A DNA stretch of 64,000 nt. It comes from Rebecca billardiae RCC1528. Lineage: Eukaryota; Protista; Haptophyta. Where the stretch lies: contig OZ251226.1 in assembly GCA_965240325.2 (NCBI GenBank), positions 248,001 through 312,000 of the forward strand, in the 5' to 3' direction. A program made the translations under genes and the position numbers. Positions 673 through 56,875 of the stretch are shown in pieces. The first letter of the stretch is position 1; each line of letters opens with the position of its first letter. The notes under the pieces were generated by a model. That model saw nothing but the letters and a program-made list of their open reading frames with translations, did not search any database and was not told the DNA's origin.

Positions 673-689
673 CGAGAGAGAGAGATCTG

Positions 690-788
<99 letters not shown>

Positions 789-790
789 TA
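599..790. repeat. (AG)n + (ATAG)n microsatellites
   Basis: direct reading. Confidence 0.95.
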
Positions 791-3693: not shown

Positions 3694-4145
3694 CGCTTCG
3701 CGACTACCGCTGATGTCCCGCCTGCCGAGCTGCGAGCACTACGGTCGTCTATCTACGGTCTACCGGGAGCAGCTTGTCAAGATAGACGCCTGTAGTGGGC
3801 CGCCTGTTGGAGCCCTGCATGGCTGCCTTCATATATATATATATATAGTGACAAAGTACGTAGCAGTGATGCTGCATTATAACAGCGCAGTAGTAGCGCA
3901 CGCGACGTCTCTCGTCTCTCTCTCTCTCTCTCTCATCGGACTCTCTCTGCTCTCTCTCTCTCTCGATCTCTCTCTCTCTCTACTCTCTGGCTGGCTCTCT
4001 CTCAATCACTCATGCAATCAGTCCACGACGACTCTGCTGTAGTCATATATGAGTCGTGTCGTCAGACTCACTCAGCTAGTCTCATCCAGCCGCCATCCGC
4101 TGAGCCTGAGGCAGACGACCAAGGATTCTGAGCGGGCTCACAGCC

Positions 4146-7100
4146 TCAGACCCGAGCCGCCCATGCGAGCACGTCCTCCGGCCGGAGGTGCACGCGGCCT
4201 GGGTTGGGCGTGCCATGCGCGTCCGCCGCTGCCAGGTCCGAGCTTTCCTCGAGCTCGATGACGGGCGCGCCGGCTGCGACCAGCTCATCCAGCACCGCGC
4301 GCCGGACCGCGCCGCGCTCGGCGGCCTCGCTCCGGCGCGAGGCTGTGCGCGTGCGCCGACCCCAGCCGGTGACGATGGCGACGGTGCGGACGGCAGCGGT
4401 GCGCGTGCCGCGCGGCTCTGCGCCGGTCTGGGCAGCCAGCCCGCCGTCGGGGGGCGCGGCGTCGGTGGCGTCGGGTGCGTCCCCGTCGGCGGCGGCAGCG
4501 GCCGCGCCGAGTTGCGGCGCGGGCAGCTGGTGCCCGCCGCACGCGCCCGCCGCGAGCTGCCGCCGCCACCAGCGCAGCGCGCCGATGGCGGCGCCCGCTG
4601 AGAGTGAGTGGAGATCGAGCACCAGATCCAGATCGAGCCCGAGATCGCCCACGCCCGCGCCACCGCCCTGCGCGGGCGTGGGCGCAGCTGCGGCGCCCGG
4701 CGGCGTGCGGGCGGCGGGCTCGCGCCCAGCCGGCTGCTGAGATACCGTGCCCGCTTGAGATACCGTGCCCGCTTCCGTGCCGTCCGCGCGCTGCGCCGGC
4801 GCCGCGGGCGCGCCGGCGGCGGGCAGCGCGTGCGCAAAGCCTGAGTACACGCCGGTCGCCACGGCGTGCTCGAAGACGCGATCGAGCACGTCGAGCGGGC
4901 GGCGCGCTCCCGCCGCCGCCGCCTCGTGCGCGTCGCCCTCCCCCGAGCCCGCGCCCGCGCGCGCGCCCGCGCGCCGCGCCGGCCGCCCGGCGCCGCCGAG
5001 CGCGCCCACGAGCTCCGCGCCCAGCGAAGCGTCGTTGCGCGCGCGCCACAGGGCCTCGCACAGCTGGTTGTAAGAGACGGCGTCCGGCCGCGGCGCGTGT
5101 CCGGCGCGCGCGGCGGCGAGCATGCGCGCGAACGTGCGCACGCCCGCGTGCCGCGCGCGCGCGCTCGCCCCGCGCGCCTGCGCGCCGAGCAGCGCGTTCC
5201 ACGCCGCCGCGGTCGGTCTGAGGCCCTCCCGTGAGACCATCCGATCGAAGAGCTCCTCCGCTCGGGCGCACGCGCCGCGCCCGCCGGCGCGGGCGCACGC
5301 GCTGATGGCGAGCGCGTACGTGTCCGCGTCGCGGCGCACGCCGTCGCCCTCCATCCGCAGGAACACCTTGAGCGCCGCCTCCCACTCCGCCGCGCGCTCG
5401 CACGCGCCGAGCGCCGCGTTGTACGTGATGGTTGCGCTCGCGCGCTCGGCGAGTGCGGGCGGCGGCGCGGCGCGCGCGGCCGCCTCGAGGCTCGAGCCGA
5501 GCTCGAGCGCGCTCGGCGCGTCGGCGGTGGCGAGGGGCTCGTCGAGCAGGCGCAGCGCGACGCGCCACTGCCCCGCGCGCGCGCACGCCGTCACCGCCGA
5601 GGTGAGCGTCTGCCAGTTGGGCGGCACGCCCGCGCCGCGCATCCTCGACAGCAGAGACAGCGCAAGCGACCAATCAGAAGCGGCCGCGGCCGCGCCCACT
5701 GCGGCGCCGTACGACTCGACGCCCGGGGCGAGGTCCTGCGCGCGGGAGGGGCGCGCGGAGGCGCGCTGCCGCCGGCGCGCGTGCCCGCCGCGCGCAGCCT
5801 CCGCCTCCGCCTCGGCGCTCGCGGCCGCGCGCCGCTCCGCGCCCGGAGCGGCGCCGCCTTGGGCCTCCGCGGCCGCGCGCGCGGCCGCCGCCTCCTGCGC
5901 GCTCAGAACGGCGAGGGCGGCGCCAACCTCGGCGGAGGCGGCGCACGCGCCGATCGCGCTCGAGAAGCTCGCGCCGGTGGGCCGCGGCGCGCGCAGGGCG
6001 GCCGAGTGCCGCCGCCGCGCCCGCTCGCCCACGGCCTCGGCCGCGCCCGCCGCTGCCGCGCTCGGCCGCGTCGCGCGCGCCGGCGCAGGCGCGCCGACAA
6101 GCCAGCAGCGCGCGCGCGCGATGGCCGCGACCGCGGCCGCGTCGACCTCGCGGACGGGGAGGTGCAGCCCGTCGGTTGCGCGCGCAGGCGCGCCCGCGCC
6201 GGCGTGCTGCATCTCGGCCCCGCCTCCGCCCGGCGCTCCCCCCGCCGCGAAAGGGCCCGTGCCTGCGAACGCCCCTGCCGCCAGCCGCAGGGGCAGCGCC
6301 TCAGCCGCGCGCATCGACTCCAGCAAGCGCACCGCCGCGCGCCATGCGCCCGCGTGCCCAAGCGCGGCGATGGCGAGGTTGCAGCTCGTGCTGTCGGGCT
6401 GCGGCCGCGCGGCCGAGGCCGAGGCCAGCTCGACCATCGCCCCGAAGAGGCTGAGCACATCGAGGGCGCCAGCCAACTTGCCGGAAGCGGCCGGCGCGCC
6501 GGCAGGGGCAGGCGACACCGCCGCGCGCGCCGCCGACGATGCGCCGTGTGCTGGCGCAGCGGAGGGCGCGCGCGCCGCCTCCGAGTCGTGGCCGTTACAG
6601 GCCATGAGCGCGCTCATCGCCGCGTTCCAGCCCACCGTGCCCGCGAGCTGCGTCACGCTCGGCCCGTCCGCCCCGCCGCGCGCGCCCGGCAGCGCGCGCG
6701 CCCCCAGCAGCGAGCTGAGAACGGCGGCGCGCGCGCGCGCACGCCCAAACGCACCGATCGCCGCAGAGCGCGTCCACGCGTCGGCTCGCACGCCGGATGC
6801 GCGCATGTGCGCGAGCACGCGGCGCACGTCCGCCGCGTCCGCGCACACGCCTAGCACCGCGCTCCACGGCTGCGCGTCGATGTGCTGCCCATCGGCGGCG
6901 GCGCTCGTGGCACCGCCCTGCCCCGCGCCCTCCTCGGCGCCGCGCCCGCTCGGCGCGCCGGCGCCATCCGAGCGGCCGCTCGCGCGGGCGCCTTCGACGT
7001 ACCAGTCGAGCGCGGTGATGGCGTCGTCGAGCTGGCCAGCGCGCGCGCACGCGCGCGCCGCGCACGTCGCGCACGCGCGGTTGAGCAGCAGGCCAGCCGC

Positions 7101-39750: not shown

Positions 39751-40081
39751 TCACGGCGTCAGTCACGGCGCGGGCGGCGGCGACGCTGCGACGGGCCGCG
39801 GCGTTACGAATTCGAATCGTGATGGGGTAAATAATAATAATAAAAAAAAATATACTACGACGAATAACTACTACGATATGACGACGACATTATTTACTGC
39901 TACTATACTATACGATACTCGATAGGCGGGCGGCATAGCCGGCATAGCTAGGCTCGGCGTCAGAGACTGCACGGGCGACTGAGTGACCGACTTGGGCGAG
40001 CCGAAGCCAGACTGCCGAGTCGGGCCATGCGGCCAGAGTGACCCAGTGATCGAGTGCGGCTGGGAATACCTGACAGACATC

Positions 40082-41816
40082 TCATTCCCACGTGAGCTCG
40101 AGTCGCCAGCGGCCGAGGATGGCGAGGTTCGCCGCGCACAGCGCGAGGGCGATCGCCACAATGGTCGTGGTCGGGAAGCCCACGGACGGAGGAGGCGTGG
40201 GCATTGGCGCCGCGCGGTGTGGCGCAGCCGGCGGCTCAAACGTGGCGCGCGGCGCTCCCTCGGCCGAGCGTTTGGCAGCCGGAGCTGGCGCCGGCGGCGA
40301 GGCGCGCTCTGGAGACACCTTGCTCCGGCTGGCTCCGCCTCGGCTCTTGGCGCCAGAGAGGTCGACCCACGAGCCGGCACCGATCGTCTTGTCCGCCCGG
40401 CCGGCGAGCTTGGCAGCGGCCAACTCGACAATGGCCGAGCCGGGCCCGCGCCGGCACGTGAGCGCTCTCCCGCCCTGCCCGTACAACAGGAGGTGGCTGG
40501 CACCTGTGGCGTGGGGGCGGGGCGGGGCGTCGCCCTGGCGGCGTCAGAGGCCAGGCGGACGCGCGGCGTGTCCGCCGTCGCGCGCGCGCGCACACGCGCG
40601 TTGCGCGCACCCCCGTGCACCCGCTGCAGCCGCAGCTCGCCCAGTGGCTGCTCCGAGCCGTGCATCTGCTTTTCTGTCGCGTAGTAGCGGAGGGTGCGCC
40701 CGCTGAGCGAGAAGACGACGGGCTTGGAGCGCCCCTCGAGCTCGAGCGTGCCCGTGAGCGCTGGGCCGTCCCACTCAGCGTCCGCCGCGTCGGCGCCCTT
40801 TGCGTCGGCGCTCGGCGCAGCCGAGCCCGCGGCCGGGGCGGCAGTCTGCTGGTGGTGCGTCGCCTCCTCTGCGGGAAGGTACGGGACCGCGCCCGTCTTG
40901 ATCAGGTCGAGCTCGTGCGCGACGGCTAGGCATCCGTGGGCGTGGGCGTACGCATCCTTCAGGCTCACGCTGAGCCGGAGGCCGTCGTTCGCCATGGCCT
41001 GTGCGGCGCAGCGCGGGCGGAGTGCGCTCAGCGCGCGCCAGCGCGCGAGGTGCGCGCTCCACCGCAGGCCCGCGGCGCGCGTGCGCGCACCTCCTCCGCG
41101 TAGCGCATCGCGGCGAAGATGTTGATCTTGGCCGCCGTGAGCGGGTGCAGCATCGGCTTGATCAGCGCCCACGTCGCCGCGAAGATGCGCGGCACGTTGA
41201 TCATGTACAGCTTGTGCAGCGACTCTGGGTAGAAGTTTGAGAAGGCAGAGATGTATGTCTTCACCAGGTGGATGAACGGCCGGCTCAGGTGGGTGAGCGA
41301 GAGGCCGTCCATGTCGAGGACGACGACGAACTTGTACAGCCGGCGCTGCAGCCGGTGCGAGTGGTGGATGCACAGCCGGCGCAGCACCTCCTTGTTGTAC
41401 ACGCAGTGCCGCAGGAATTCCTTCTCGTCAAACGTCGTCTTGAACTCGTGCGCCGGGATGCGCCCGATCGACTCGATGATGACCGGGTGGCCCTCGGGGT
41501 CCTCGCCGATCACGCCCGTGCGCCACATCGACTCGAACTGCTCGCGCTTCGGCGGCACGTTCGCCTCCTCGAGGATGGTGTCGCACTGCTCCTCTTTGCG
41601 CCACTCGGAGACTGTCTTCATGTGCGACACGCTGGTGGCCATCCAGTCCGGCTCAGAGACGTAGCCGCGGATGAACTGCACGACCGCGTCGCGGGGGAGG
41701 CCGTTCAGGTCGTCGCCAAGCACGCGCTTGGCCTCGCTGAGCACCGCCTGCTCATCGGCGGTGAGCGGCTCCGACTCCGCACCAATGTGCCGATCACTCG
41801 GCACTCGCGGGGACAT
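40082..41816 (-). CDS. CRAL-TRIO (Sec14) protein with PH-like segment and C-terminal TM; introns 41090-40999, 40610-40504
   Basis: G.DPEGHPVIIE, VVVLDMDGL, FYPESLHKLYMINVPRIF..W.LIKPML.P.T..KI; F.LSGRTLRYYATEK...PLGEL; hydrophobic tail; GTGCGC donors. Confidence 0.8.
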
Positions 41817-42130
41817 GGCAGCCTGCGCCGCGCCGCAGGGGAGGTTCGGCCGTGGGCGATGGTCAGGCGGGTCGCACGCTTGCCGTGCGCGCACACGCGC
41901 GGTGCTCCGTCCGTCCTCCACCGCCGGCTTGCCCGCGCACGCACCTCGGTCCAGTCGGTGTCGGCGATCTGCTGCGCGAGCTGCTTGAAGGCAAGCCAGC
42001 GCCCAGCGAGCTCTCTTTCCGAGAAGCTGCCACGGCGCTCGCTCGCGAGCGTGGCGTCACTCGGTGAAAGTCCGGAGCGCGCCAGCGGAACGGCGGCAGC
42101 GTCCGCCGCTCCACCCGTGGACTCGTCGCG

Positions 42131-42538
42131 ATGGCGCACTTCTTGGTCGGGGCATTCCACTTCTTGCGCGCGCGCGCGATGCAGGCGCCACTCACGTTCG
42201 TCGGCGTCTCTGCAGCCGTCACGTACTACGGCGTCTACGACATCTCGTACATGCTGGCTTCGACCGTCGCGTTCCACTCGCCAACAAAGACGCCAGCTCT
42301 GTGCAAGTACAGTGGCCATGCCGGTGGGCTTGCCGTGGGGGCAGCGGTGCTCTCGCTGCGCTTCCCGAGGTCAGCGATCGTGAAAGCCGTAAGCAGTGGC
42401 CAAATTATGTCGGCACCGTGGATGGAAGCGACGGTGACTGTCGGGACGTCAGCTGCGGCGAGCGGCGCTGTGTCTGCCGTCGCCCAGCGCGTGTGCACAT
42501 CCAGGCGTAGTGCTCATGTGCATGAGGCCAGGAGCTGA
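42131..42538 (+). CDS. small hydrophobic hypothetical membrane protein
   Basis: ATG-led 135-aa ORF with non-Arg-biased composition and ~3 hydrophobic stretches, divergent from the Sec14 gene. Confidence 0.5.
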   Translation: MAHFLVGAFHFLRARAMQAPLTFVGVSAAVTYYGVYDISYMLASTVAFHSPTKTPALCKYSGHAGGLAVGAAVLSLRFPRSAIVKAVSSGQIMSAPWMEATVTVGTSAAASGAVSAVAQRVCTSRRSAHVHEARS

Positions 42539-44281
42539 TGACTGCGCACTAGGCGAGTTAAGAGCGGCATGATGAATTGATGCCAGGCCGCGAGCATGGA
42601 GCTAGTCTTCGCACTGGACCGACGAAGTGACGACGACGATTATGAGTGAGCCCGGCGCCGCCGCGCCCCGGGCGCAGCGGCGGCGGCGGCGCGCGGCGGC
42701 GCGGCCGCACCGTGGCACGGTGCGGCGCCCGGGCGCGGCCCCGGGGGCCGCGGAGTCGGGAGCTGGCCGCTGGCAGCGGTAAACTCCAGAAAACTCCTTC
42801 CATAGACCGTACCCGCCGGCCGGCCGGCCGCGGTCCAAGTCTGACAAGACTCGGGCCGCAACGGGGCCAACTCTGGCCCGAACGGCGAACTTAGTAGTAA
42901 CCAACTAATTTTATTTTAAAGGCATCAACTTGAAGTTCTGAACTGGCCAAGCTCGGTTAGTTTGTTAGCTCCGGGCCCTGGCGCGCCGCCTGACCGTCGG
43001 TTCGGACTGAGAATGACTAATGAACCATTGCCCATTCGCCGCCGCGGGCCGGGCCGGCGCGCCGTTAATTAAGCTAGTTAGAACTTTTGCTGGCTGTATG
43101 ACGGACTCGGACTCGGTTGAGAATGAGCTCTGACAGCATTCGCCGCCGGGCCAGGCCCGGGCGCGCGGTCACGCACACGGCGGTCCCGGACGCGGCGCCA
43201 CGCGCGGCGCGGCGGCACCGGCGGGGTCGGCGCCTATTGGGCTATTGGCAGAGGGCGCTGAGCCTCCCTATCAGGCTTCTGCCGTCTTCGACGCGATCGA
43301 CGCGCCGCCATAATCCCATATCGCGGTGCCACTCACACCGTTATTATATCAAAGGCGATACTGCTCTATGATTCAGAAATATACCATACTACGACCAGTT
43401 GCACGCGTGAGCGCCGAAAAAACGACACTTTGGCAGTGATGATAGTCACCGTCGCCGCCTCGGGCATGCCGCTGCCGCCGGCAGCAGCGGCAGCGGGAGC
43501 GTGGCAGCGGATCTATACCACCTTCTGCGTTACATCACGCTGCGTCGTGCGCGCCAGGTGGCAGGTGTCCCCTGTCTGCCGCGCGGAAGGCAGCTGTCGG
43601 CGAGCGCAGAGGAGAGAAGGAAGGCGCGCACGCATCGTGAGAGCTTCAGCAGCTTGCCCACGCGCTTCACGTAGGCGGTATCGTTGCGTGCGCACGCCTT
43701 CTGTACCCGTACACGCGATCGCAGCGTGAGCCACTCCAGCCTGCCTGCGCATCGCGGGCCGAGCCGCCGGCGCCTGGTCTCCTGAATCCTCGTTCACGAG
43801 GACAGCACGTGTATGTATCCGTGGCGCGCTCGCTGCCGATGGCGGCTCCCCGTGTCGAGGGCGTTTGGCTGGAGCCGCATCCAGGGCATATATCGTCACG
43901 GTCCCACCCGATGCTGACGCTGAGGTGGCGCGCTTGCCGAAGGCAGCAGCATTGGCTGATGCCTTCTGCATTGGCCACCTCTGCGCGACAGCGCGTTCAC
44001 GCTGCCGGCGCGCGGGCGGCGTCGCTTGGTGGGCACCTGCCTTGGGTTTTGTCGTTCGTTCTCAGCGACGGTTGGGTCGATTGACATGCCGATTGGATTG
44101 GGGCATTGCGAATCGGCTTCGCAATGCCCCATTCCGCTCGGATCGGCGCGGGCGTCAGCCATGCGGCAGCGCGAGTGACAAAACCGACATTTCATACGCA
44201 TGTCGTTTTTTCATACGCTCACGGTTACTCACCCGTGCAACGGGTCCTACGATCGACGACACAGTCTATTGACTATTTGCG

Positions 44282-44873
44282 TGTGTCGGAGGGGTTGATG
44301 AGCCCGAAACGACTGAGCGAAATCGGTTCGCGCGAACCGATTCAGCTCAGTCGTTTCGGGCTCATCAACCCCTCCGACACAACCGTAAAGTCACCTGTTC
44401 GAATCCAGCGACCGACACGCAGGCATATAAGAACTCTTGGCCTTTCACGCGAAGTGCTTTCGACCTCGCGAGAGCCTCGCGGCTCCGGGGGGAATGAAAA
44501 GCGAGGCGGAGTCGGCAAAAACGAACGAAAAAAGAGGGGAGCACGAAGAAGATGACCACGACAAAAAGCCAGACGACAGAAAACGAGCACGGTCCGCGAC
44601 GCGCAACCTCCGGGTATAGCGCGCGCTGCGCGCCGCGCTGCAACTTGGGTTGTCGCAGCACTCGCGGCAGTTGCTGTCGATGTCGATGTCATCGTACAGA
44701 CCATCGACATCTTCACCCCTGAGCGGCAGGCATAATTATGGGTCCTCGGGGTAGTGTCCAACAGGGGACTTACGGTTATGTCGGAGGGGTTGATGAGCCC
44801 GAAACGACTGAGCTAAATCGGTTCGCGCAAACCGATTTAGCTCAGTCGTTTCGGGCTCATCAACCCCTCCGAC
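44282..44873. mobile_element. element with ~115-bp TIRs whose outer ~94 bp are self-palindromic
   Basis: palindromes 44282-44381 and 44780-44873; inner flanks AACCGTAAAGTCACCTGTT / AACAGGGGACTTACGGTT are inverted to each other. Confidence 0.75.
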
Positions 44874-44914
44874 CGCGTACAGTACGGCTATTAAGCATCA
44901 AGTAGTTATTATAT

Positions 44915-46570
44915 GTGGCGTTATAGGGAACCTATAACTGAGTGTCTATGAGCGACGCCAAGAATCCGGCTCGCACGGCATTCCTGCGTTGTCCTGTGCG
45001 CACCGCCGCGCGCAGGAGTCCTGGTGCGCTGCCAATCTGGCCCACAGCGGCGCACCTGCAGGACTCGGTTGGTTACCGCTCACATCGGATCGATCAGGCT
45101 TCGCTCTCGGGGGCGCCATGGGGCTGCTCACGACGAAGGCGCCGAGCTGGGCAAGGGAATCGCCTGCATCGGGCACTGCCGGGTGCACGCTCCGCTGCAG
45201 GAGGTGCACCGCAGTCGCCGCAGCCCCTCTGCTCGGTAAGGTCGCTGGCTGTCTGTGTGGCCCGGCTCCCCGCCTGATCGTTCGGCGGCGCGACGTCATC
45301 ATCTGTCTTCGCCGCGTCGCCCCTCATGCAATGGTCTCTTGCTCTCGCCGCTGTCGCGTCAACCCGCACGCTTCATCGTTTGAGATACGCGCTCGCCTCG
45401 CGCCCGTGCGTCGCGCGGGTGCGGCGCACTCTGACGCGTGTCTGCTCGCCGCGCGTCGCGATCGATCGTGCGCGCGCGGCCGCGCAGTCCTCGTCTCTTC
45501 TATTTCTAAACGGGATTCATCAACGACTACTTGGACGCCCGCTCCAACTTATAAACGGGACTCGCGGGCGCCCTCTCGACCTCGGGCAGCAGCTCAACCG
45601 CCACGCCGCTGCCAGCGCCCGCCGTCGTTCGTTGCTCAAATCCCAACATAGCTAACCTGATCGTTCCATGATTGATCATTGTGGTCTGTCTACTCCACGA
45701 CGCCGCGCGCCGCGACCATCCAGCTCCAGAGTCCATTCGTACCCGACGCCTTGTACGAGCCGGGCATGGCGGAGTGGCTAGACGTGGCGTTATAGGGAAC
45801 CTATAACTGAGTGTCTATGAGCGACGCCAAGAATCCGGCTCGCACGGCATTCCTGCGTTGTCCTGTGCGCACCGCCGCGCGCAGGAGTCCTGGTGCGCTG
45901 CCAATCTGGCCCACAGCGGCGCACCTGCAGGACTCGGTTGGTTACCGCTCACATCGGATCGATCAGGCTTCGCTCTCGGGGGCGCCATGGGGCTGCTCAC
46001 GACGAAGGCGCCGAGCTGGGCAAGGGAATCGCCTGCATCGGGCACTGCCGGGTGCACGCTCCGCTGCAGGAGGTGCACCGCAGTCGCCGCAGCCCCTCTG
46101 CTCGGTAAGGTCGCTGGCTGTCTGTGTGGCCCGGCTCCCCGCCTGATCGTTCGGCGGCGCGACGTCATCATCTGTCTTCGCCGCGTCGCCCCTCATGCAA
46201 TGGTCTCTTGCTCTCGCCGCTGTCGCGTCAACCCGCACGCTTCATCGTTTGCCCGCCCGCCCACCCTCGGCCTCTGGCGGATATGGAAGCACTGCAGTGT
46301 CAGCGAGCCATCAGCCTTAATCGACCTTGCTCAGTGACTGACGACTCGCGGGCGCCCTCTCGACCTCGGGCAGCAGCTCAACCGCCACGCCGCTGCCAGC
46401 GCCCGCCGTCGTTCGTTGCTCAAATCCCAACATAGCTAACCTGATCGTTCCATGATTGATCATTGTGGTCTGTCTACTCCACGACGCCGCGCGCCGCGAC
46501 CATCCAGCTCCAGAGTCCATTCGTACCCGACGCCTTGTACGAGCCGGGCATGGCGGAGTGATGGCTAGAC
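44915..46570 (+). mobile_element. miniature split-direct-repeat element A-x-B-A-y-B, family 2
   Basis: A 44915-45382 = 45784-46251; B 45559-45783 = 46343-46570; junction CTAGAC|GTGGCG; AT flanks. Confidence 0.8.
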
Positions 46571-46719
46571 ATATATATATATAGCAGTTAGCAGTAGTCG
46601 TATGCCACATAATCGGCGCCGGCCCGCCGTGGTGCCACTGGCCCGATGAGAGCAGGGCTCAGATGACAGAGTCACTGAGAGTCAGATGACAGCTACACGG
46701 AAGGCAGACTCAGGCTCGC

Positions 46720-48264
46720 TCAGACGCTGAGAATCACCGGCATCATCATCGACATCAACGCGGATGACCCCGACGCAGTAGCCGACGCTGCACGTGTGCT
46801 GCGATTGCTGCTCAGGTCAGATGCGGCTGTACGGCCCATCTGCTGCCACGCGAGGCCAGGGTCGGCGCCCTGCGTGAGGACGGCAGCCGACGGCCAGTCG
46901 ATGGCTGGCGCGTGCGCATGCGTGCGCTGCGCGCCGAGGGCTCGCCCCGACACGTCGAGCAGCCGCGCGAGCGCTGCCGCGCGAGTGCCGTTGGCGCGGT
47001 CTGACGGACCCGTGGTCCCATCGGGCTGCGCGTCGCTCGCCCAGGGTGCCCCCGTGCACGGCCAGATGTCGTCATGCGGGCACTCGCCCTCGTGGAAGCG
47101 CTCCTGCTCGAAGAGCCACTCCTGCAGCCGGTGCCAGCACCGCGTCTTGTGCCGCGCCGCCGAGCCGCCGATCGATGAGCTGTCGCCGATGTGGAAGAAG
47201 AGGCTCCAGCGGAAGGCGTGGATGCGGCGGCCGGCGTGGTGCGCGGCGGCGGCGCGGTACTTGGAGCGCAACCAGCGGTACGCGAGGTGGTCGGGCGGCG
47301 CCTTCGGCAGCGCGTTGTCCGGGAGCGCCGCCGGGTCCCCCAGGAACTGTGCGAGTGCGCGCACGTCCGCGCCGCCATGCAGTATCACTCCATTCAGGCC
47401 GTACGACACCCGGACTGCGGCCCACGCCGGCCGGCGGAGCTCGGCGCGCCAGCCGCGGCCGGCGTACAGGCTCGCCTTCGCCACGGCGTACGCCATCGCG
47501 CCCACCGCGCCCGGACACGCCAGCCAGTCGTCCTCCAGCAGCGCGACGAAGGGTGCGAGCTGCGCTGCGTCGAACGCGAGGAGCATGCGCGACACGTCTG
47601 CAGTCTGCCGCTGGACCGGGGTGGTCTCGATGGGCGGCTGCCGCGGCGCGCGCACGGCGGCGCGCTCGCCCTCCAGGCGGCGCAGCCAGTACACCGCGCT
47701 GCCGAGAGGATGGCGCCCGGGTGCGTACCGCGCGCGCGCGCGCTCCCATGCCGGGTGCGGCGCGCTCTGGTTGCCAGCGCGGAACACTGCGACGCACATC
47801 GGAGGCTGGGTGCCCAACGCGCCGTCGGCCGAGCTGGGCATCTGCGCCAGGAGCGAATCTAGAGTGCGCTCAAGGTATGACGAGGGCGCGCGCGAAGGGT
47901 CCTCCGCGAGGCTCGCGCAGCTGTTCCCCGCGCGCCCACAGTCGATTTTCCGAGGGGCGCTTGGCATGATGCAGCACAGCCAGTGTGGGAATGAGGACGC
48001 AGCCGTGTCGGCCGTCGCGTGCAGGGTTGAAGCATTCGGGCCGGCCAAGGGCGCGTCCTGCAGCCCACCGTCGAGCGCAGCGGCAAGATCTCTCCTGCCC
48101 CCATGCCGTGCTGACGCCGCGTTCGGCGGGTGTGCGCGGCGGCCCGCGCTGCCAGCAGCGCTGGGTGGCGCATGAGACGGGCGGTCGTGCACCGTGTGAA
48201 AGTAGATCACGAGCGCAAGCTGGGCGAGACATGCCAGCGCGCCAATGAGACGTGCGTACCGCAT
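46720..48264 (-). CDS. type II membrane glycosyltransferase, GT54/MGAT4-like
   Basis: N-terminal TM; SYLERTLDSL, LLEDD, GLNGVIL, PPDHL, LFFHIGDSSS. Confidence 0.65.
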   Translation of the reverse strand: MRYARLIGALACLAQLALVIYFHTVHDRPSHAPPSAAGSAGRRAHPPNAASARHGGRRDLAAALDGGLQDAPLAGPNASTLHATADTAASSFPHWLCCIMPSAPRKIDCGRAGNSCASLAEDPSRAPSSYLERTLDSLLAQMPSSADGALGTQPPMCVAVFRAGNQSAPHPAWERARARYAPGRHPLGSAVYWLRRLEGERAAVRAPRQPPIETTPVQRQTADVSRMLLAFDAAQLAPFVALLEDDWLACPGAVGAMAYAVAKASLYAGRGWRAELRRPAWAAVRVSYGLNGVILHGGADVRALAQFLGDPAALPDNALPKAPPDHLAYRWLRSKYRAAAAHHAGRRIHAFRWSLFFHIGDSSSIGGSAARHKTRCWHRLQEWLFEQERFHEGECPHDDIWPCTGAPWASDAQPDGTTGPSDRANGTRAAALARLLDVSGRALGAQRTHAHAPAIDWPSAAVLTQGADPGLAWQQMGRTAASDLSSNRSTRAASATASGSSALMSMMMPVILSV

Positions 48265-48570
48265 GCATGACCCATGCGCGCAGCTTGACAAACCGTCGGC
48301 CGTCGTCAGGACCGCGCTGCGCGGCAGGCTCCTGGCCGCCGTCAAGTTGTGTTCACGAGACGCCAAGCGGAGGCGCCAATAATCTGATGCGCGCGGCGAT
48401 GGGGCGACCTCGTGACGACTGAGCAACCCGGCGGCGGAGCTTGGGCAGACTTGGAGTGCTTTCTTCAGCAAACTGCATGCACCCAGTTGCCGATTTCATG
48501 CTGCGGTTAAGCAGTCGCTCCGTGACCTTTCCGCACGTGTATTGTAGTGTCCGCGCGCGTGAATAGCGCG

Positions 48571-49416
48571 ATGAATGTGCGCATGCTGCTGGGGCTATGC
48601 GGTGCGCTTGCCGCCCACGCCGCCCACGTGGACAAGGTCTTCTTCATCGGGCAGGGCTCGACGGGCACGCGCACGCTCTCGGAGATGATGCGCGCGCGGG
48701 GGTACAAGACGGTGCACAACATTTGCCCCGACGCGAGGACGCCTTGGAACCACCCGGTGCTTCACCACGATAAGCACCATCGATGCCTCGTCGAGAACCA
48801 GGCGTTCCTCGACCACGGCGATCTGCTCGACCTGAACTGGCTTGCCGCGGAGTATCACAACGCGCGCTTTGTTCTGAACGTCCGCCCTCTGCTGAATTGG
48901 GTGGTCAGTCGCGTCGACCACGCGGCGAACAAGCGGCTCGAGCTGGGCTGCTCGCCGTACGGGACAAAGCGGACGTGCCCGAAGCTCCAACACATGCCCG
49001 ACAACTCGAACATCACCGTCGCGCACTGGATCAAGCGCGTCGCTGCGATGCAGTCCAAGGCGCTGCGCATGTTCAGCACCTCGTGGTCGCTGCGCCAGCG
49101 CTTCGTCGTCATTGGTCTGGAGACGATGAAGCCGTGCGATGTGGATAAGCTCCTGGATTGGGTACTGCGGCACGACTACTCCAACGCGCGCACCACACCA
49201 CACCTGATCCACAACGCCGCCGAGCTGCCGCCGGGTGGCCGAGCGCACTGCTCGCGCGCCGCCGCTTCGACACACACGGGCGTGGTCTCGCATCCGCCGC
49301 GCACGACGCGGCGAATCCACTCGCTGCTCCGTGCGTTTGGCTGCGGCCAGTCGATGTGGAACGACGTGATGTACATGCGGTGCGCAGCCAAGATACCACG
49401 CTCGATGCTGCACTGA
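48571..49416 (+). CDS. secreted Sulfotransfer_4-like P-loop protein, paralog 1
   Basis: signal peptide; KVFFIGQGSTGTRTL..RGY..H, AFLDH, Y.NARFVLNVRP..W..S. Confidence 0.7.
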   Translation: MNVRMLLGLCGALAAHAAHVDKVFFIGQGSTGTRTLSEMMRARGYKTVHNICPDARTPWNHPVLHHDKHHRCLVENQAFLDHGDLLDLNWLAAEYHNARFVLNVRPLLNWVVSRVDHAANKRLELGCSPYGTKRTCPKLQHMPDNSNITVAHWIKRVAAMQSKALRMFSTSWSLRQRFVVIGLETMKPCDVDKLLDWVLRHDYSNARTTPHLIHNAAELPPGGRAHCSRAAASTHTGVVSHPPRTTRRIHSLLRAFGCGQSMWNDVMYMRCAAKIPRSMLH

Positions 49417-49626
49417 CTGATTTGCAGAGCCAATAGCCAGAGTCCGGCTAGCTACATGTAACTGTGATGTAAGATAGTCTACTGTAAGAATATATATATG
49501 TGTATATACCTATATATTATATTAATATATATACTAAATAAAGAGTATAAAGAGACGCCGATCACCATCTTCAGATCTACTCATCATCAGTCATTCAGTG
49601 GCATATTACATAACTGCTATATATAT

Positions 49627-51285
49627 GTCTAGCCACTCCGCCATGCCCGGCTCGTACAAGGCGTCGGGTACGAATGGACTCTGGAGCTGGATGGTCGCGG
49701 CGCGCGGCGTCGTGGAGTAGACAGACCACAATGATCAATCATGGAACGATCAGGTTAGCTATGTTGGGATTTGAGCAACGAACGACAGCGGGCGCTGGCA
49801 GCGGCGTGGCGGTTGAGCTGCTGCCCGAGGTCGAGAGGGCGCCCGCGAGTCGTCAGTCACTGAGCAAGGTCGATTAAGGCTGATGGCTCGCTGACACTGC
49901 AGTGCTTCCATATCCGCCAGAGGCCGAGGGTGGGCGGGCGGGCAAACGATGAAGCGTGCGGGTTGACGCGACAGCGGCGAGAGCAAGAGACCATTGCATG
50001 AGGGGCGACGCGGCGAAGACAGATGATGACGTCGCGCCGCCGAACGATCAGGCGGGGAGCCGGGCCACACAGACAGCCAGCGACCTTACCGAGCAGAGGG
50101 GCTGCGGCGACTGCGGTGCACCTCCTGCAGCGGAGCGTGCACCCGGCAGTGCCCGATGCAGGCGATTCCCTTGCCCAGCTCGGCGCCTTCGTCGTGAGCA
50201 GCCCCATGGCGCCCCCGAGAGTGAAGCCTGATCGATCCGATGTGAGCGGTAACCAACCGAGTCCTGCAGGTGCGCCGCTGTGGGCCAGATTGGCAGCGCA
50301 CCAGGACTCCGCCTGCGCGCGGCGGTGCGCACAGGACAACGCAGGAATGCCGTGCGAGCCGGATTCTTGGCGTCGCTCATAGACACTCAGTTATAGGTTC
50401 CCTATAACGCCACGTCTAGCCACTCCGCCATGCCCGGCTCGTACAAGGCGTCGGGTACGAATGGACTCTGGAGCTGGATGGTCGCGGCGCGCGGCGTCGT
50501 GGAGTAGACAGACCACAATGATCAATCATGGAACGATCAGGTTAGCTATGTTGGGATTTGAGCAACGAACGACAGCGGGCGCTGGCAGCGGCGTGGCGGT
50601 TGAGCTGCTGCCCGAGGTCGAGAGGGCGCCCGCGAGTCCCGTTTATAAGTTGGAGCGGGCGTCCAAGTAGTCGTTGATGAATCCCGTTTAGAAATAGAAG
50701 AGACGAGGACTGCGCGGCCGCGCGCGCACGATCGATCGCGACGCGCGGCGAGCAGACACGCGTCAGAGTGCGCCGCACCCGCGCGACGCACGGGCGCGAG
50801 GCGAGCGCGTATCTCAAACGATGAAGCGTGCGGGTTGACGCGACAGCGGCGAGAGCAAGAGACCATTGCATGAGGGGCGACGCGGCGAAGACAGATGATG
50901 ACGTCGCGCCGCCGAACGATCAGGCGGGGAGCCGGGCCACACAGACAGCCAGCGACCTTACCGAGCAGAGGGGCTGCGGCGACTGCGGTGCACCTCCTGC
51001 AGCGGAGCGTGCACCCGGCAGTGCCCGATGCAGGCGATTCCCTTGCCCAGCTCGGCGCCTTCGTCGTGAGCAGCCCCATGGCGCCCCCGAGAGTGAAGCC
51101 TGATCGATCCGATGTGAGCGGTAACCAACCGAGTCCTGCAGGTGCGCCGCTGTGGGCCAGATTGGCAGCGCACCAGGACTCCGCCTGCGCGCGGCGGTGC
51201 GCACAGGACAACGCAGGAATGCCGTGCGAGCCGGATTCTTGGCGTCGCTCATAGACACTCAGTTATAGGTTCCCTATAACGCCAC
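49627..51285 (-). mobile_element. second, inverted copy of split-direct-repeat family 2
   Basis: reverse complement of 44915-46570; internal junction at 50413/50414. Confidence 0.85.
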
Positions 51286-51297
51286 ATATATGAATAT

Positions 51298-53620
51298 GAT
51301 CGGCTCACGCCGATCTTCGGGTAGTACTATAAACGCCAACGAAGTTGAGGGCAAACGGCCCTAGCTAGTTCCGCGCGTGGCGCTGCGTGCGCCAGCTGCG
51401 CGCACCCGCTGCGCCCGCGTTGAGCATGCGAGCGCCGCGCCTGCGAGCACACGCGGCGGCTCGACACAGCCGCACGGCAGTGTCGCTCGTGCGCCTGCCC
51501 GTGATCATCAGTCTCAGCTCTGAGGCGCGCGCTCAAGGAGGGCTGCGGCCGGGCCGAGCGCGATCTGCGCAGACGGTACAGCCCGTGGTGGCTCATGGGC
51601 AGCCCGAGCCCAAAGCCCGCCTCCGCCATCCGCGTCACAGCCGGCCGCTCCAGCCGAGGTCTCGCGTGCTGCGCTGCAGCCGTGCTAGGCCGAACCGGAC
51701 GCCCGCCGAGCCGAAGCCGGGCACGCGGCTGATGAGCAGTGGTAGCCAGGCGAAGCCGTCGTCGCGGGCGAAGCTGCGCTGGGTGATGCGGCTGAGCAGT
51801 CGGGTTATACAGATTAGTTACAGTAAACGCGGGCCCGGGCTCACTGGAATCACACCGCGGGCCGGCGACCGCGCAGCCGGGAGCAGGCCCGGGCGCGCAA
51901 TAACTATGAGCAAAATATCCGGCGCCAGAAAAGCGGCGGCGGCGCTGGCATGCGCCTAGCGGCACTGCCCTGGTACAGTCTACGCTCCCCTGGCCAGCCC
52001 AGCCGCCGCCGGGGCCATACCAGGCCACCACGGCGAAGCGCGCGCTCCCGCGGAACACCTCGGCCCGACACTGGCGGATCACCCGGCAGTCGTCAGCCGT
52101 CTGACGCGTAGCGCGTAGTCGACAAATGGCTGCTGACGGCGTAAAATCGGCCTGCGCGGCGGATGAAACGGCTGAAAGGCGAGGCCACGACGCCACCCAA
52201 CTGGCGCACGCGCGTGCGGCCGGCGGTGCGGCGCAGCTCGGTCACTGCCACCGCTCCCGCGGGCTGCTCACTCACTCACGCCGAGCGCTGTGTTTGACCA
52301 CGAGACAGTGCCGTCGCCCGCGATGGCAGCTGCAAGCTGATCGTGCGCTCGCCGCTCCCAGACGATGCAGCAGCCACGGACGTCACACACGGCACGGGGC
52401 GAGTGTGCCTCGAGCCTGCACCACATCTTCGCCCGCCCTGCCCTCGCAAGGCGATGCAGACTGCAGAGGGCTGTCGCAGTCGTCTGGCGCAAGCAGCTCA
52501 CACGCCGCGCACCGCGCGCGTGGCCGTGATGGGTCGGCACAGCCCAGTCAAAGACACGGCATCGTATCGCCCTCTGGCCGCCAGCAGCATCACCTCTGCC
52601 GTCTGCGAGCGACTCGTAGTTGCAGCAGCAGCCGCCAAGAGCTTGCACAAATAAACTGCGCAACGGGCGCGCCGACGCGCGTGGACGCGGGTCGGCACCG
52701 GGGCGGGGCGCGAGGGGGGAAAGCGGCACGAATGCGATGCCGACGGCCGTTGGGACCCACCGCAGCCGCGCGCACCTGCGCTGAGTCTGTCGGATTGAAC
52801 GATCGTGCGACGGCGGCCTACATGGGCAGTGGCGGCTTTCTGCGCCTTCCGGTTCGGAGCCTGCTGCCCGCCCGTCAATCAGCGCGAGCTGCGCAAGGCC
52901 GTACCATGATATAGTATTAATCATGAAGGGAGATATTATGAATATTTGTCCGCTCAAGTTTATCGTTCATATTCGTCAAGCTCTCCCGGACGCGCCGGTA
53001 TTAAATGGGAGAGAATCAAGGGTCGTGCGTGAAGCGCGGTAGAAATTCTTATGCTCATGAGATTTTCAGGCCCGTCAATGCGGGTGGCAATCCATTCTTG
53101 CAATCACAAGAATGGATTGCCACCCGCATTGACGTCGTATCAGTAGATGACCAAAAGTATATCAGCAAGAGTAGGTTGATAACCGTATGATACCAGGGCG
53201 CGCGGGAACGTCGATTCAAGCTACCCGCGCAATACCATATCGCGTCGCTTTGATGAATCTGAGGAGTGAACAGCTATCCAGAGAATTAGTTCGATATCGC
53301 ACCTTTTTTATGGTCAGTTCAACACACGAATATTGACTATCAGAAAGGTATCAGAGATGACTTCGTCCTATTTGATTCCGATTTCTTCTATTACTTACTA
53401 TCCAAAGATTAAGGGACAGTACAAACGCAATCATGAGCAGCGATATGGGGTCTCTATGCTGCGGTTTCACACCTAAATCCACCTACAATAAAAATCCCCC
53501 AAATCCTGCGCGCATCCTCTTTTTTGATTTTGCGGAGCACGTGCGCCGCCCCCCCCCCCCCCCCCCCCCCCGGCTTTCGCTCACGCTCAGACCTTTCGCC
53601 TTTCGGGGGGGCCGTGCGCC
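51298..53620 (-). mobile_element. hairpin-ended element (beta 5' end, type-2 3' hairpin)
   Basis: 5' GGCGCACG..CGAAAGGTCTGAGCGTGAG shared with 57861; 3' hairpin GATCGGC-GTGA-GCCGATC + AT; 51377-51480 homologous to 13975-14075; boundary pairing is inferred. Confidence 0.55.
53074..53133. repeat. perfect 27-bp-stem hairpin
   Basis: GTCAATGCGGGTGGCAATCCATTCTTG-CAATCA-CAAGAATGGATTGCCACCCGCATTGAC. Confidence 0.9.
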
Positions 53621-55099
53621 ATAAGTCGTACAGTCTTTTTAAAAAATAATGTGGCGATGAGTATAACTTTGTAAGCTACTCGCTGCCGATGGCTAGGATT
53701 CTAGCATTTCTAGCGCTGAGATCGGCGGTTGGAACCCCTGGAGCCTGGAGGCAGGGCGTGCAGTCGGGCTGTCGGCACTGGGTACGTAGCTATGCGCAGC
53801 CTGCTGCCCTGCTGTCAGTGTCACTGTCTGTCTGCTGTCACAGAGCCATCATAGAGTAGCAGTGTCACTGTCAGACAGTCAGTGTCATTACGCTCTCACA
53901 CTCAGACTCAGACGTTCAGTCTCTGCCTCTGCCTACAGTCTAGGCCGCTCTGAGCTCTGAGTCTGACGACTCGGTCGTCCAGTAGCTACAGTTTACGGTA
54001 AGACGAACAAAACGACCGGCGCAGGCAGGTGAGGGGCGCGTTGATGGCAGTACCGTACCACTGTACTCTATACATTTTACTAACTCTAACTATGTTTTAA
54101 CGTGCACACTAAAAGAGACCGGCGCAGGCAGGTGGGGGGCGCGTTGCCGCACCAATCATCGAGGGCGGCCATTGCAGGCAAGCGGCCGCCCCGCGCTCGG
54201 AGGCACGCGCTCGAGAGCGCGCTCTGACACCACACGGTGAGGGTGCTGCACCTGGATGTTGTATCCCAGTGCGTGTAGTCCCTCAAAATTTTAAGCCTCC
54301 CGACATCATTGTTCGCCATATATCCGCGCAGCAAAGCAGCGGCGCGCCACCATACCGTAGGGGCGTACTAAACGATAGGGGCGTACTAAACTTAACGACT
54401 CCCGAATGCACAAAAGCAGGGGGTCAGCTGAATTAATGCAGCTCACACGACCGCGCTCCACGCCGAAAACCAGCCCGTATCTGCCCGCCGGCTGGCTCGT
54501 GCATGCGCACCGACTGCCGGGCGCATCGACACCGTGGCGCACAGAGCGTGGGTGCCGCGGCCGGGTGGGTATGTGCTGACGCGGCTGGGCGGTGGGCCTG
54601 GTGCATGCGCTGGCTGATGGGCTCTGCCCGGGTCGGCGCGTAGCGGGCGTGCGGGCTGAGACAAAGTCGTGCCGGCTGCAGCCGGCGACTAAATTGTGGG
54701 TCCCTATCTAGTATCTCCTTACCGGCCGAAGGCTGGACTCCCAGTAAGCTAGTCCCACCCTTCAGCTTTTTATAACTATGTGCGAATCAAGGCCTATATG
54801 GCCGGCCATGACCGATGATGATATGGGCCACTAGGCGGCCATGGCCGATGGTTAGCGGTCGACCAGCCATCTCTGGCCGATGGGTATTGGCCGATGGCCG
54901 TCCGGCGGCCGGAATGTGGGAGGCCGCGCCCGGGGCGGCACCGGGCCACGGCGCCGGCGCGTGGCCGCGTGCGCACGCCGCGCGGGCTGCAGCACTGTCC
55001 GACTCTGCACGGTCGTAGTCCGAGAGGGCGGCCTCGGGGCTCGGCCGACCCAACCGGTGGACTTGTTGAGCCCCAGTGGCGGTCTCGACCGAGCTTGGC

Positions 55100-55101
<2 letters not shown>

Positions 55102-55149
<48 letters not shown>
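55102..55149. repeat. (TG)n microsatellite
   Basis: direct reading. Confidence 0.95.
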
Positions 55150-55151
<2 letters not shown>

Positions 55152-55734
55152 GTTGCTGATATCAGTTACAGATGACTACTGTATGTCTATTGTATTCTGC
55201 GCGCCGGCCCGGAGAGTGAAGGACGCGAGGTGCAGGCGGCGAGCCCGGCGCCGACTCCGACGAGGGCGAGTCAGCGGCCGCACCCGCGCCCGCGACCGCG
55301 CCCACGCCCGCGCCCATTACCCCTACTTCTGCCACGGCACGCGCTTGCACTGCCGCAGCAGCGCTGCTGCATCGTCTGAGAGTACGTCTGCCGACGCGGC
55401 GACTGCGGCAGCCTCTCAGCGGCGAGCGGACGAGCGGTGGCTGCAGCAGCACAGTAGTACGTCGGCTGCAAGCAGCTTATTCTGCGACGAGATCATGCCC
55501 AGACAGAGTCAAGGCGACCTCGTTGGGGAGTACGTTCTGCCTTCGGAGTGGTGAATACTATAATGCGCCGAAAAATAAAATAAAGTATGAATGAATGAAT
55601 ATATATATATATATATATTAACGACGTGGTATGCAACGGGCAGGCGTCAGAGTATACATATCGTCCTTATTTCATTTATTCGTCGTAGTCGGCCACTGGC
55701 CGATGAACGGGCGAAAGTGGGCATCCTGTAATAA

Positions 55735-55845
55735 TAAATTCCCCTTTATAACGGGCTCCGGGTGATCAGACTGGCGGCCGAAGCCTCCAGCCCTACCCTG
55801 GCCAGCCCCCAACCAACCACCACCCTCACCCAAACTCAAACCACT
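55735..55845 (+). repeat. TTATAACGGGCT-family copy
   Basis: matches 31931-32044. Confidence 0.8.
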
Positions 55846-55930
55846 GTGGCCGACGGGTTGGCCGACGCCCGTCGAGGCTTGCTTGATTCGCACACCTTAG
55901 CTTCAGCACCGTTTTTGCTGTATGTATATA

Positions 55931-56875
55931 TCTCTTCATGGGGCGTTGAAATTGGCGTTCCAAGCCAGTGACAGGTCGATTCAGCGACCTCGAATTGGGT
56001 ACACATCGATCTTCATCTGTCACATATGTCACGTCACGGCCGTTACATGACAGGTATTGGTCGAAAATCCGAAGGGTGGGATCCCACCCTTCAGTTCAGA
56101 ACCGCCTTCACCTACGCTGACACATTGAGGCGCTCTGGTCAGCCAGAAACGCGTGCTACGAGTGCAGCGTGGCCAGGAAGCATCGCGTACTACTCCCTGG
56201 CTTACGTCAGCCCATGTCGGACGCCCTGAGTAGCAGTTCGCTTCATCGCGCACGGGTGCGCGCGCACGTAGCCGCTGGCCGACGTGGTGAGCGCGTCGGG
56301 CGGCCGCGCGCGCGCACGAATCGAGTGTCAGCAGCAGCACATGCTCGCGCTCAGCGGGGGAACATGTTTGCTCACTAGGCGCCTGGATCAGCAGGCTAGC
56401 AGCCGTGGTAGACGTTGCAGCTGATGGGGTGGAAGGCTCGACCGCACGCCTGGCAACAGGACGGCGCGAGCGACCGCAACCACCGCCCCGCCTGCGTCCG
56501 CGAGGGGGCTGAGCACCTTGACCTTACGCGTCGCCCTGGCTGGGCGTTGGGTCAGATGTATCTATCCTACTCCCAGCGTCGCGCGCGGGCTCTGAGCCGG
56601 TTGGCGTCTTAACGGTCTCCTCGTCCGTGCAGTTGTTGCCGCATCATCGAGGGAATCACGACCGTCGGCCAGATCGTCGAGCTCGAGCGGGCCAAATTCG
56701 TCCTCTGATCAGATGGCAGCCTATCGGGTCAATCGTCTACCTCGTCACCCATACCGACCGTACCGACCCTTCCGCTCGCCACTCTGAGCCTTGCGCCGTC
56801 GTCAGAGCTCGCGCGCACGGGCGCCATCGCGAAGGGTGGGACCCCACCCTTCCGGCCCGCCCGCCGGAAAAGAGA
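55931..56875. mobile_element. TCTCTT...AAGAGA TA-flanked element with GAAG-N14-CTTC palindromes
   Basis: TA|TCTCTT and AAGAGA|TA; GAAGGGTGGGA(T/C)CCCACCCTTC at 56071 and 56831. Confidence 0.6.

Follow-up and report, generated by a model that had tools for sequence, protein, structure and literature searches.

Two short copies of a non-coding element, inverted to each other in the genome of the haptophyte Rebecca billardiae RCC1528, raise the question of what kind of mobile element they represent and which protein moves them. The window, which here means the whole 64,000-nt stretch of DNA that was analysed (contig OZ251226.1), contains both of them. The original prediction took them for miniature, ORF-less parasites of tyrosine-recombinase (YR) retrotransposons, the order in which direct repeats are split between the ends and the interior of the element.

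Layout, termini and targets of the two copies

Both copies follow the order A (468 bp)-x (176 bp)-B (225 bp)-A-y (91 bp)-B. This proposed layout was confirmed by a repeat search and by direct reading, and the proposed size of 1.66 kb also holds for both. Copy 1 is precisely 1656 bp long with its right end at 46570 (44915-46570, plus strand), and copy 2 is 1659 bp long (49627-51285, minus strand). In copy 1, A1 (44915-45382, 468 bp) is identical to A2 (45784-46251) and is followed by the internal region x (45383-45558, 176 bp), which sits where coding relatives have their ORF and carries an ACGGGAT motif ~45 nt before B1 (45559-45783, 225 bp). A2 is separated by the spacer y (46252-46342, 91 bp), which is unrelated to x, from B2 (46343-46570, 228 bp), all parts being on the plus strand. 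The corresponding parts of copy 2 on the minus strand are A1 (51285-50815), x (50814-50639), B1 (50638-50414), A2 (50413-49943), y (49942-49852) and B2 (49851-49627).

Three diagnostic variants had been reported, and each of them is indeed common to both repeats within one copy and different between copies 1 and 2: GCAGGAG versus GCAGGCGGAG and TTCGCTCTC versus TTCACTCTC in A, and CCCGCCGTC versus CCCGCTGTC in B. Copy 2 belongs to a haplotype group other than that of copy 1. The claim that the repeats are homogenised within each copy stands overall, but in copy 1 a private GAT insertion 9 nt from the end of B2 keeps B1 and B2 from being strictly identical.

At the internal junction, CTAGAC is joined directly to GTGGCG, so that the right and left ends of the element meet exactly, as originally described, and these sequences match the termini of full elements elsewhere in the genome. 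All 15 clean full elements start with GTGGCG after a TATAT flank (ATGT in one), and 14 of the 15 end with CTAGAC before a TA or CA run, the exception being locus L012, in which B2 is truncated at position 214. A and B, which form the left and right ends of the element, have unrelated sequences. Direct reading placed copy 1 between a TA-rich flank (TTATTATAT, 44906-44914) and an (AT)n flank (46571-46583), and copy 2 between an (AT)n flank at its B2 end (49618-49626) and a TATAT flank at its A1 end (51286-51291). All insertions lie in TA runs, where a target-site duplication of 2-5 bp, which YR retrotransposons of the split-direct-repeat type should lack, is indistinguishable from the microsatellite. 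Related flanks exist, and none of them has an uninterrupted, empty target site.

The ORFs inside the element have no Pfam match, in agreement with its description as ORF-less. Recent activity is likewise borne out by four copies from separate loci that agree at 99.9-100% identity; copy 1 is 100% identical to the copies on contigs C11, C7 and C1. In an Rfam search of positions 40000-56000, neither a hammerhead ribozyme nor any other family matched the element down to E = 1. The same search gave only sub-threshold miRNA-like matches, which fall on neighbouring palindromes.

Repeat homogenisation, monomers and arrays across the genome

A genome-wide search gave at least 118 A starts and at least 112 B ends, and none for the reversed control pattern. 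The A1-x-B1A2-y-B2 layout, with B1 directly abutting A2, was found in 15 clean and ~8 variant elements. We used the 15 clean full elements to compare the differences within each own pair of repeats with those of shuffled partners (20,000 shuffles). A1 equals A2 exactly in 11 of the 15, and these elements comprise 12 A haplotypes. The own-pair differences sum to 8 for A versus 67.9 when shuffled, and to 10 for B versus 20.4; for neither repeat was any of the 20,000 shuffles as low. The prediction that A1 would pair with its own A2, not with other A1 copies, therefore holds in these elements. Private variants occupy both repeats, as seen for a CTCA insertion in L008 and for the multi-site haplotypes of L014, L017 and L018, and no column among the 15 elements is fixed as different between the first and the second repeat. 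Gene conversion between adjacent repeats could be an added source of this homogeneity.

From the listed coordinates, we counted approximately 23 dimers, 18 monomers and 4 arrays. The monomers are of two kinds, AyB and AxB, and the arrays on C11, C12 and C19 contain 3 to 5 units. Their order is almost always (AxB)n-AyB with the y unit always last, and AyB-AxB occurs in none of the arrays and multi-unit loci found. It had been proposed that common monomers and longer arrays of variable length would speak for simple tandem or rolling-circle insertion. The numbers go part of the way toward that picture, but the forms argue against it. The two monomer kinds are the products expected from A1/A2 or B1/B2 recombination, which argues against simple tandem insertion; a like origin has been described for the solo AB repeats of Ngaro (PMC8547959) and for SIRE (PMC6681497). 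The order of the arrays is as expected from solo-repeat formation, from unequal exchange or from repeated jumps between templates, and does not fit simple rolling-circle tandems. The trimer L009 has unlike A copies, so homogenisation does not extend to every multi-unit locus, and its unlike middle unit is bounded precisely by a B end on one side and an A start on the other.

The middle unit of L009 is what junction insertion would give under a DNA-only process, in which a tyrosine recombinase would excise double-stranded A-to-B circles and re-insert them, much as Cryptons or integron cassettes move, AxB circles would enter the junctions of resident AyB units, and gene conversion would keep neighbours alike. 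The presence of both monomer kinds and of arrays, together with the resemblance of the B/A junction, which is palindromic around a short spacer, to a recombinase site, also agrees with such a process. However, a dimer assembled from two separate molecules would not have private variants common to A1 and A2, whereas 11 of 15 pairs show zero differences; the AyB-AxB order is missing although both junctions would be equivalent; and the recombinase of the coding relatives is fused to a reverse transcriptase (RT) and an RNase H. We therefore regard the DNA-only process as unlikely.

The arrays of 3 to 5 units would also be in line with plain tandem duplication of a 0.8-kb repeat, unrelated to retroelements, by a rolling-circle (Helitron-like) route or by unequal crossing-over. 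Helitrons have 5' TC and 3' CTRR ends with a subterminal hairpin and insert between A and T, whereas the ends here are GTGGCG and CTAGAC. Since, in addition, the two units of every dimer differ in the unrelated x and y, y is always last, and the same layout surrounds an RT-RNase H-YR protein elsewhere in the genome, this explanation appears very improbable.

A coding relative, common signals and a chimera

The original prediction called for a longer element with an A-...-BA-...-B layout around RT, RNase H and YR domains, and held that a genome lacking any YR retroelement would count against it. Such an element is present on contig C33, with termini that resemble those of the small element. It is 5.7 kb long and has the same layout, A'-ORF-B'A'-y'-B', with A' of 236 bp, an ORF of 1286 aa, B' of 151 bp and y' of 435 bp, and it is flanked by (TA)n and (CA)n. 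The ORF contains RT motifs A, B and C and the RNase H residues D-E-D-H..N..D, conserved across 15 homologues. The RT has no match in Pfam or PDB sequence searches and is visible by its motifs and by a fold search, in which retroviral and LTR-element reverse transcriptases were the sole matches of the predicted fold, namely MMLV (E = 1.6e-5), CaMV, foamy virus, HIV-1 and Ty3. The YR domain reaches 24 bits against PF00589, under Pfam's cut-off of 27.1, and PF00589 is matched by 6 of the 15 aligned sequences (query and homologues), with a best E of 9e-8. A Gag-like ORF1 and the lack of a methyltransferase domain would set Ngaro apart from DIRS/PAT; Pfam gave no methyltransferase match in the ORF, while some distant homologues carry PF00145. 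At least six RT-RNase H copies exist in the genome at 98-100% identity. A sister family has an upstream ORF of 849 aa without any Pfam match, and no YR was seen in it.

Some loci that might be taken for coding elements with the small element's termini proved to be something else. The long A...A interval L031 on C23 consists of two AyB monomers flanking a host RCC1/F-box gene, and the A-only loci L034-L036 are deletion fragments, none of them a coding copy bounded by the A and B of the small element itself.

The small element and the C33 element have three short signals in common: the initial 31 nt of A (87%), the geometry of a junction hairpin, and ACGGGAT before B1. Outside these signals, we found no common sequence. 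The hairpin (z = -2.9) spans the B1/A2 junction of copy 1 (45777-45822, plus strand) and has two storeys. In its outer stem, the B end (TAGAC) pairs with A positions ~29-33 (GTCTA), and its inner stem is an 8-bp palindrome, GTTATAGG-GAA-CCTATAAC. Both stems are changed on both sides in two coding families and in one distant metagenomic relative, and the hairpin includes a G-T pair on the plus strand only. A further connection is the chimera L032, which combines a piece of the small element with the ORF of the coding family inside a third set of termini, as would be expected if RNAs of the small element and the coding family were copied together. Its illegitimate joins fall precisely on the 3' edges of A-type repeats.

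The identity of the coding protein also bears on the suggestion of a TRIM-type LTR element or of a Penelope-like one carrying pseudo-LTRs. Hallmarks of Penelope-like elements are a hammerhead ribozyme in the pseudo-LTR, variable 5' truncation and a GIY-YIG nuclease partner, and MRC1 of Chlamydomonas proved to be Penelope-like with pseudo-LTRs. Despite the small size, the direct repeats and the inverted pair in the window, all of which are common in Penelope-like insertions, we consider this the least credible explanation, since the repeats are split (A left, B right, BA inside) instead of forming terminal LTRs, the related protein has a tyrosine recombinase instead of an integrase or GIY-YIG nuclease, and the 15 clean full-length elements all start at the same base with no variable 5' truncation among them (A1 is truncated at a few loci outside this set, L020, L021 and L028).

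Taken together, copies 1 and 2 are probably, at roughly four chances in five, independent recent insertions of a miniature, ORF-less YR retrotransposon with split direct repeats of the Ngaro/VIPER/PAT type, most likely mobilised in trans. On the sequence evidence, the mobilising protein is most likely the RT-RNase H-YR protein encoded by one of this genome's coding families; because only short motifs are in common, this helper is assigned by resemblance only. From the homogenisation and the chimera L032, we infer that the small element passes through an RNA intermediate.

A possible copying route and the closest known systems

Under the retrotransposon reading, each round of copying would pass through an RNA in which, of the A and B repeats, only A2 and B1 are complete; A1 would be rebuilt from A2 and B2 from B1, much as both LTRs of an LTR element are. 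The folded B/A junction may be the copying stop, or the place where the recombinase joins and cuts the ends. If the stop were missed and a further jump followed, x-B-A units would be added, giving (AxB)n-AyB arrays, and A1/A2 or B1/B2 recombination would leave AyB or AxB solos. How YR retrotransposons are copied is still debated, with models that involve circles or linear single-stranded cDNA, and integron integrases are known to act on the folded strand of attC. The strict order of the arrays, the joins in L032, and the two-sided stem changes with the plus-strand-only G-T pair lead us to suggest, as a tentative possibility, that split-repeat YR retroelements in general are copied through successive template jumps, which would usually halt at a folded single-stranded junction, and that this folded strand is the substrate of the recombinase. 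If so, the miniature family would be the minimal substrate that defines all cis-signals of the order.

A 1.66-kb element that keeps only its copying signals narrows the search for them to four places, namely the initial 31 nt of A, the hairpin at the junction, the motif ahead of B1 and the A/B edges, and its many young copies, arrays and chimeras are natural 'mutants' of the copying process. The strict choice of (TA)n targets is unusual for this order and may help the study of recombinase site selection.

The small element adds one more non-autonomous parasite to a known order and does not represent a new type; elements of this sort are already known from TOC1, SIRE/VIPER and the solo AB repeats of Ngaro. 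TRIMs are similar in being miniature, ORF-less and moved in trans, with repeats that are rebuilt in each cycle and identical at insertion. TRIMs carry complete LTRs at both termini together with PBS and PPT signals, and a DDE integrase gives them a 5-bp duplication; the small element, by contrast, has split repeats and a partner with a tyrosine recombinase. TOC1, with a length of several kb, is a member of the PAT/TOC branch, which has a methyltransferase-bearing partner, while the small element measures 1.66 kb and is of another lineage. TOC1 of Chlamydomonas reinhardtii is a non-autonomous element of the DIRS order (PMC9940879, citing Day et al. 1988), and it resembles the small element as a non-coding YR retrotransposon that moves with the enzymes of coding relatives.

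SIRE of Trypanosoma cruzi, a short non-coding unit made of A2, ~30 bp and B2 of VIPER (PMC6681497), resembles the AyB monomers in joining an A repeat, a short internal piece and a B repeat. In contrast to SIRE, which is A2-B2 only and has its sequence in common with VIPER, the small element is a complete A-x-BA-y-B unit and, apart from short signals, has a sequence unrelated to that of the coding family. Ngaro elements, for example those of Cafeteria burkhardae, have the layout A1-[ORFs]-B1A2B2 and solo AB repeats ascribed to recombination between the repeats (PMC8547959), and thus parallel the small element in their split direct repeats, isolated A-B units and RT-RNase H-YR coding partner. 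Unlike Ngaro, the small element has a 176-bp non-coding internal part and a 91-bp spacer between A2 and B2, its insertions are confined to (TA)n, and its coding relative on C33 has one fused ORF, with no separate Gag ORF (ORF1) found in that element.

Layout and insertion sites of the window pair

A repeat search of window positions 43000-53000, together with direct sequence reading, placed copy 1 of the small non-coding element at 44915-46570 on the + strand and copy 2 at 49627-51285 on the - strand. The copies are inverted, tail-to-tail, with 3.06 kb between them, and each has the order A (468 or 471 bp), x (176 bp), B (225 bp), A, y (91 bp), B, in which x and y are unrelated sequences. The original prediction had pointed to three diagnostic variants, and all are present, common to both repeats within a copy and different between copies; the internal junction CTAGAC|GTGGCG likewise proved to be the exact right end joined to the exact left end. 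Two details of copy 1 were corrected: its right end is 46570, and its B2 has a private GAT insertion close to the end.

In the full elements (n = 15, at different loci), the left flank ends in TATAT, or once in ATGT. The right flank after CTAGAC starts with AT or AC in 14 of 15 full elements, the exception being locus L012, where B2 is truncated at position 214. The insertion target of the small element is (TA)n, and the element ends are fixed. Immediately past the (AT)n next to each B2 end, window positions 46584-46620 and 49580-49617 are alike (AGCAGTTA ... TATGCCAC); from this likeness, the two copies may have inserted in related copies of one TA-bearing repeat. Flanks of several other small-element copies are also mutually related, in opposite orientation. 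At L012 and another locus, L013, a short A-start fragment (GTGGCG, or GTGGCGTTATAT) recurs in the right flank past the (AT)n following B2, and it may be a remnant of an earlier insertion or excision in the same microsatellite. Immediately to the left of copy 1, a 95-104-nt perfect palindrome is present in two copies (44270-44393 and 44770-44873; 97% identity), 495 bp apart. On both strands these gave Rfam hits below threshold to models of plant miRNA precursors, and they probably mark the two ends of a small element of foldback or MITE-like type.

Forms of the family and homogenisation of its repeats

When the 72-Mb, 41-contig, GC-rich eukaryotic assembly, in which the window corresponds to C8:248001-312000, was searched, the 30-nt A-start pattern gave at least 118 matches and the B-end pattern at least 112, while the reversed control patterns of both gave none in the genome. 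The census of forms is approximate and covers the matches listed (first 100 places per pattern) and 30 fetched loci. Among the matches listed, there are at least ~23 AxB-AyB dimers (15 clean, 8 with deletions or insertions), at least four arrays of 3-5 units, at least ~10 AyB and ~7 AxB monomers, and a number of deleted fragments. The arrays are of the form (AxB)n-AyB, with n = 4 on contig C11 and n = 2 on C12 and C19, and at one locus, L009, the order is AxB-AyB-AyB. The order AyB-AxB within one insertion was never found among the fetched or listed loci. The middle A haplotype of L009 (G000:C12:2334032-2336486) differs from both outer A repeats, a pattern that would result from insertion of an AyB unit at the B/A junction of an existing dimer or from recombination between two unlike copies.

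Every A and B copy from the 15 clean dimers was aligned. A1 and A2 are identical in 11 of the 15 and differ by one substitution in three; those of L015 differ by later indels. Between elements, the A differences average 4.8 with a maximum of 15, and 12 A haplotypes are present. Variants private to one element or a small lineage occur in A1 and A2 alike: L008, for example, has CTCA inserted in both, and L014, L017 and L018 have multi-site haplotypes that include a 5-nt insertion. In the 15 clean dimers, first and second repeats show no fixed difference at any alignment column. When second repeats were dealt randomly among elements in 20,000 shuffles, the summed difference was 67.9 for A (8 observed) and 20.4 for B (10 observed), and 0 of 20,000 shuffles were as low as the observed value in either case. 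DNA copied "as is" would transmit A1- and A2-specific changes separately; the data are the opposite. Copy 1 groups with L002-L004 and copy 2 with L005, L007, L010 and L012; therefore, the window copies are separate insertions and not an inverted duplication.

These data bear on two DNA-based explanations. A DNA-only cassette, in which A..B circles are excised and inserted at junction sites, accounts for the monomers, the arrays and L009, but it leaves unexplained both the private variants in the two repeats of a dimer and the absence of AyB-AxB. Simple tandem or rolling-circle growth fails, being contradicted by the x/y asymmetry.

Coding relatives and common signals

Searched with the Pfam integrase model, the genome yielded five weak matches, nearly identical to one another, within long open frames. 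The match on contig C33 is part of a 5.66-kb element flanked by (TA)n and (CA)n(TA)n. In order, this element has A' (236 bp), a single 1286-aa ORF starting within A', a spacer of repetitive sequence, B' (151 bp), a directly adjoining second A' with 100% identity to the earlier one, then y' (435 bp) and a second B' (98%). The predicted long element, in which ends of the same kind flank RT/RNase H and a tyrosine recombinase (YR), was thus found; a separate Gag ORF is absent from it. Downstream of the intact coding element on C33, at a distance of 0.8 kb, is a small-element dimer (L023 and L033; G000:C33:121591-126322) in which a 3.16-kb insertion separates A position 60 from position 61.

The RT of this ORF was undetected by Pfam and PDB sequence searches. 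In the ORF, RT motif A reads ..TDDVADFFNH, motif B LGFGLSPSSNIAQR and motif C FTDD, and the RNase H residues D-E-D and H..N..D come after them. These RT and RNase H residues are invariant or nearly so in 15 homologues at 31-38% identity. The predicted structure of residues 1-700 has a mean pLDDT of 64, with values exceeding 80 in the palm, connection and RNase H regions. A fold search matched only retroviral and LTR-element reverse transcriptases (MMLV, E 1.6e-5; XMRV, CaMV, foamy virus, HIV-1, HERV-K and Ty3), with low global TM-scores. At the C-terminal end of the protein, PF00589 is matched with 24 bits; of the 15 aligned sequences, six match this model (best E 9e-8). The nearest named relative of the protein is from Chrysochromulina tobinii. 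PF00145 (C-5 cytosine DNA methylase) is also present in the metagenomic RT-RNase H-YR homologues P0002, P0018, P0025, P0026, P0028 and P0029.

At least six RT-RNase H copies at 98-100% identity are present in the genome, with further families at 61% and 55-59%. In the RT-RNase H coding region, a sister family, comprising L037 (G000:C24:531300-539300) and L040 (Logan contig ERR14847148_3660), is 96.6% identical in DNA and 98% in protein. Its 3' end reads B''A''y''B'', its upstream ORF of 849 aa matched nothing in Pfam, and no tyrosine recombinase was found at the position corresponding to that of C33. Each of the two families may lack a part carried by the other.

The small and coding elements are unrelated overall, and their likeness is confined to short parts. 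The first 31 nt of A show 87% identity, and the motif ACGGGAT lies 30-50 nt upstream of B1, not of B2, in 3/3 families. In the small element, C33 and the family of L032 (a chimeric element), the B/A junction is spanned by a two-storey hairpin. Its inner stem is 8 bp with a 3-nt loop (GTTATAGG/CCTATAAC in the small element, GTTATAGC/GCTATAAC in C33 and GTTATAAC/GTTATAAC in the L032 family), with 4-nt internal loops on both sides, and in its outer stem the last B bases pair with A positions ~29-35 (TAGAC/GTCTA in the small element, GGACAC/GTGTCC in the coding families). The outer stem is possible only where B is joined to A. The metagenomic relative L039 (31% protein identity; ENA metagenome contig ERZ1764468 k141_3294844, 6860-6925) has the same geometry across the junction with quite different letters (AAGAG..GGTTTCAC-GACA-GTGAAACC..CTCTT). 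Its B (77 nt) is repeated, 226 nt apart, and an upstream A1 was not found on that contig.

L032 (G000:C18:1301000-1310999, 423-6945) is bounded by A''/B'' termini of its own, arranged in the usual layout. Inside, small-element A(180-468)-x-B-A(1-466) comes first and runs directly into the 3' two-thirds of the C33-type RT-RNase H-YR ORF, beginning with RT motif C (98.8% identity). Both illegitimate joins coincide with the 3' edge of an A-type repeat or lie 2 nt away from it. This three-way mosaic is as expected from template switching between co-copied RNAs; it supports, although it does not prove, passage of the small element and the coding families through the same machinery.

Proposed mechanism and known systems

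The coding family is assigned by resemblance as the probable helper of the small element. The RNA would carry one complete A and one complete B as the internal B1A2, from which A1 and B2 would be rebuilt, and the junction hairpin could be the stop or joining point. Read-through of this stop followed by another jump would add x-B-A units; repeated addition gives exactly the observed order A-[x-B-A]n-y-B with y always last. The AyB and AxB monomers may come from recombination between A1 and A2 or B1 and B2, the origin that has been proposed for the solo AB repeats of Ngaro (PMC8547959). Unequal exchange could also make arrays and would account for L009.

For LTR-TRIM, Penelope-like and Helitron readings of the small element, one defining feature is missing in each case. 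The split-repeat layout and solo repeats are textbook for Ngaro. The C33 element shares its layout with Ngaro, published as A1-[ORFs]-B1A2B2 (PMC8547959), and with VIPER (PMC6681497; see also PMC4157794). The monomers resemble SIRE, which consists of A2, ~30 bp and B2 of VIPER (PMC6681497), and non-coding members of the YR retrotransposon order are already known in TOC1 (PMC9940879) and SIRE (PMC6681497). To these, the present family adds a very small complete element with a strict (TA)n target, a clear record of arrays and chimeras, and a helper relation that would be maintained via short structured signals alone, the helper being assigned by resemblance.
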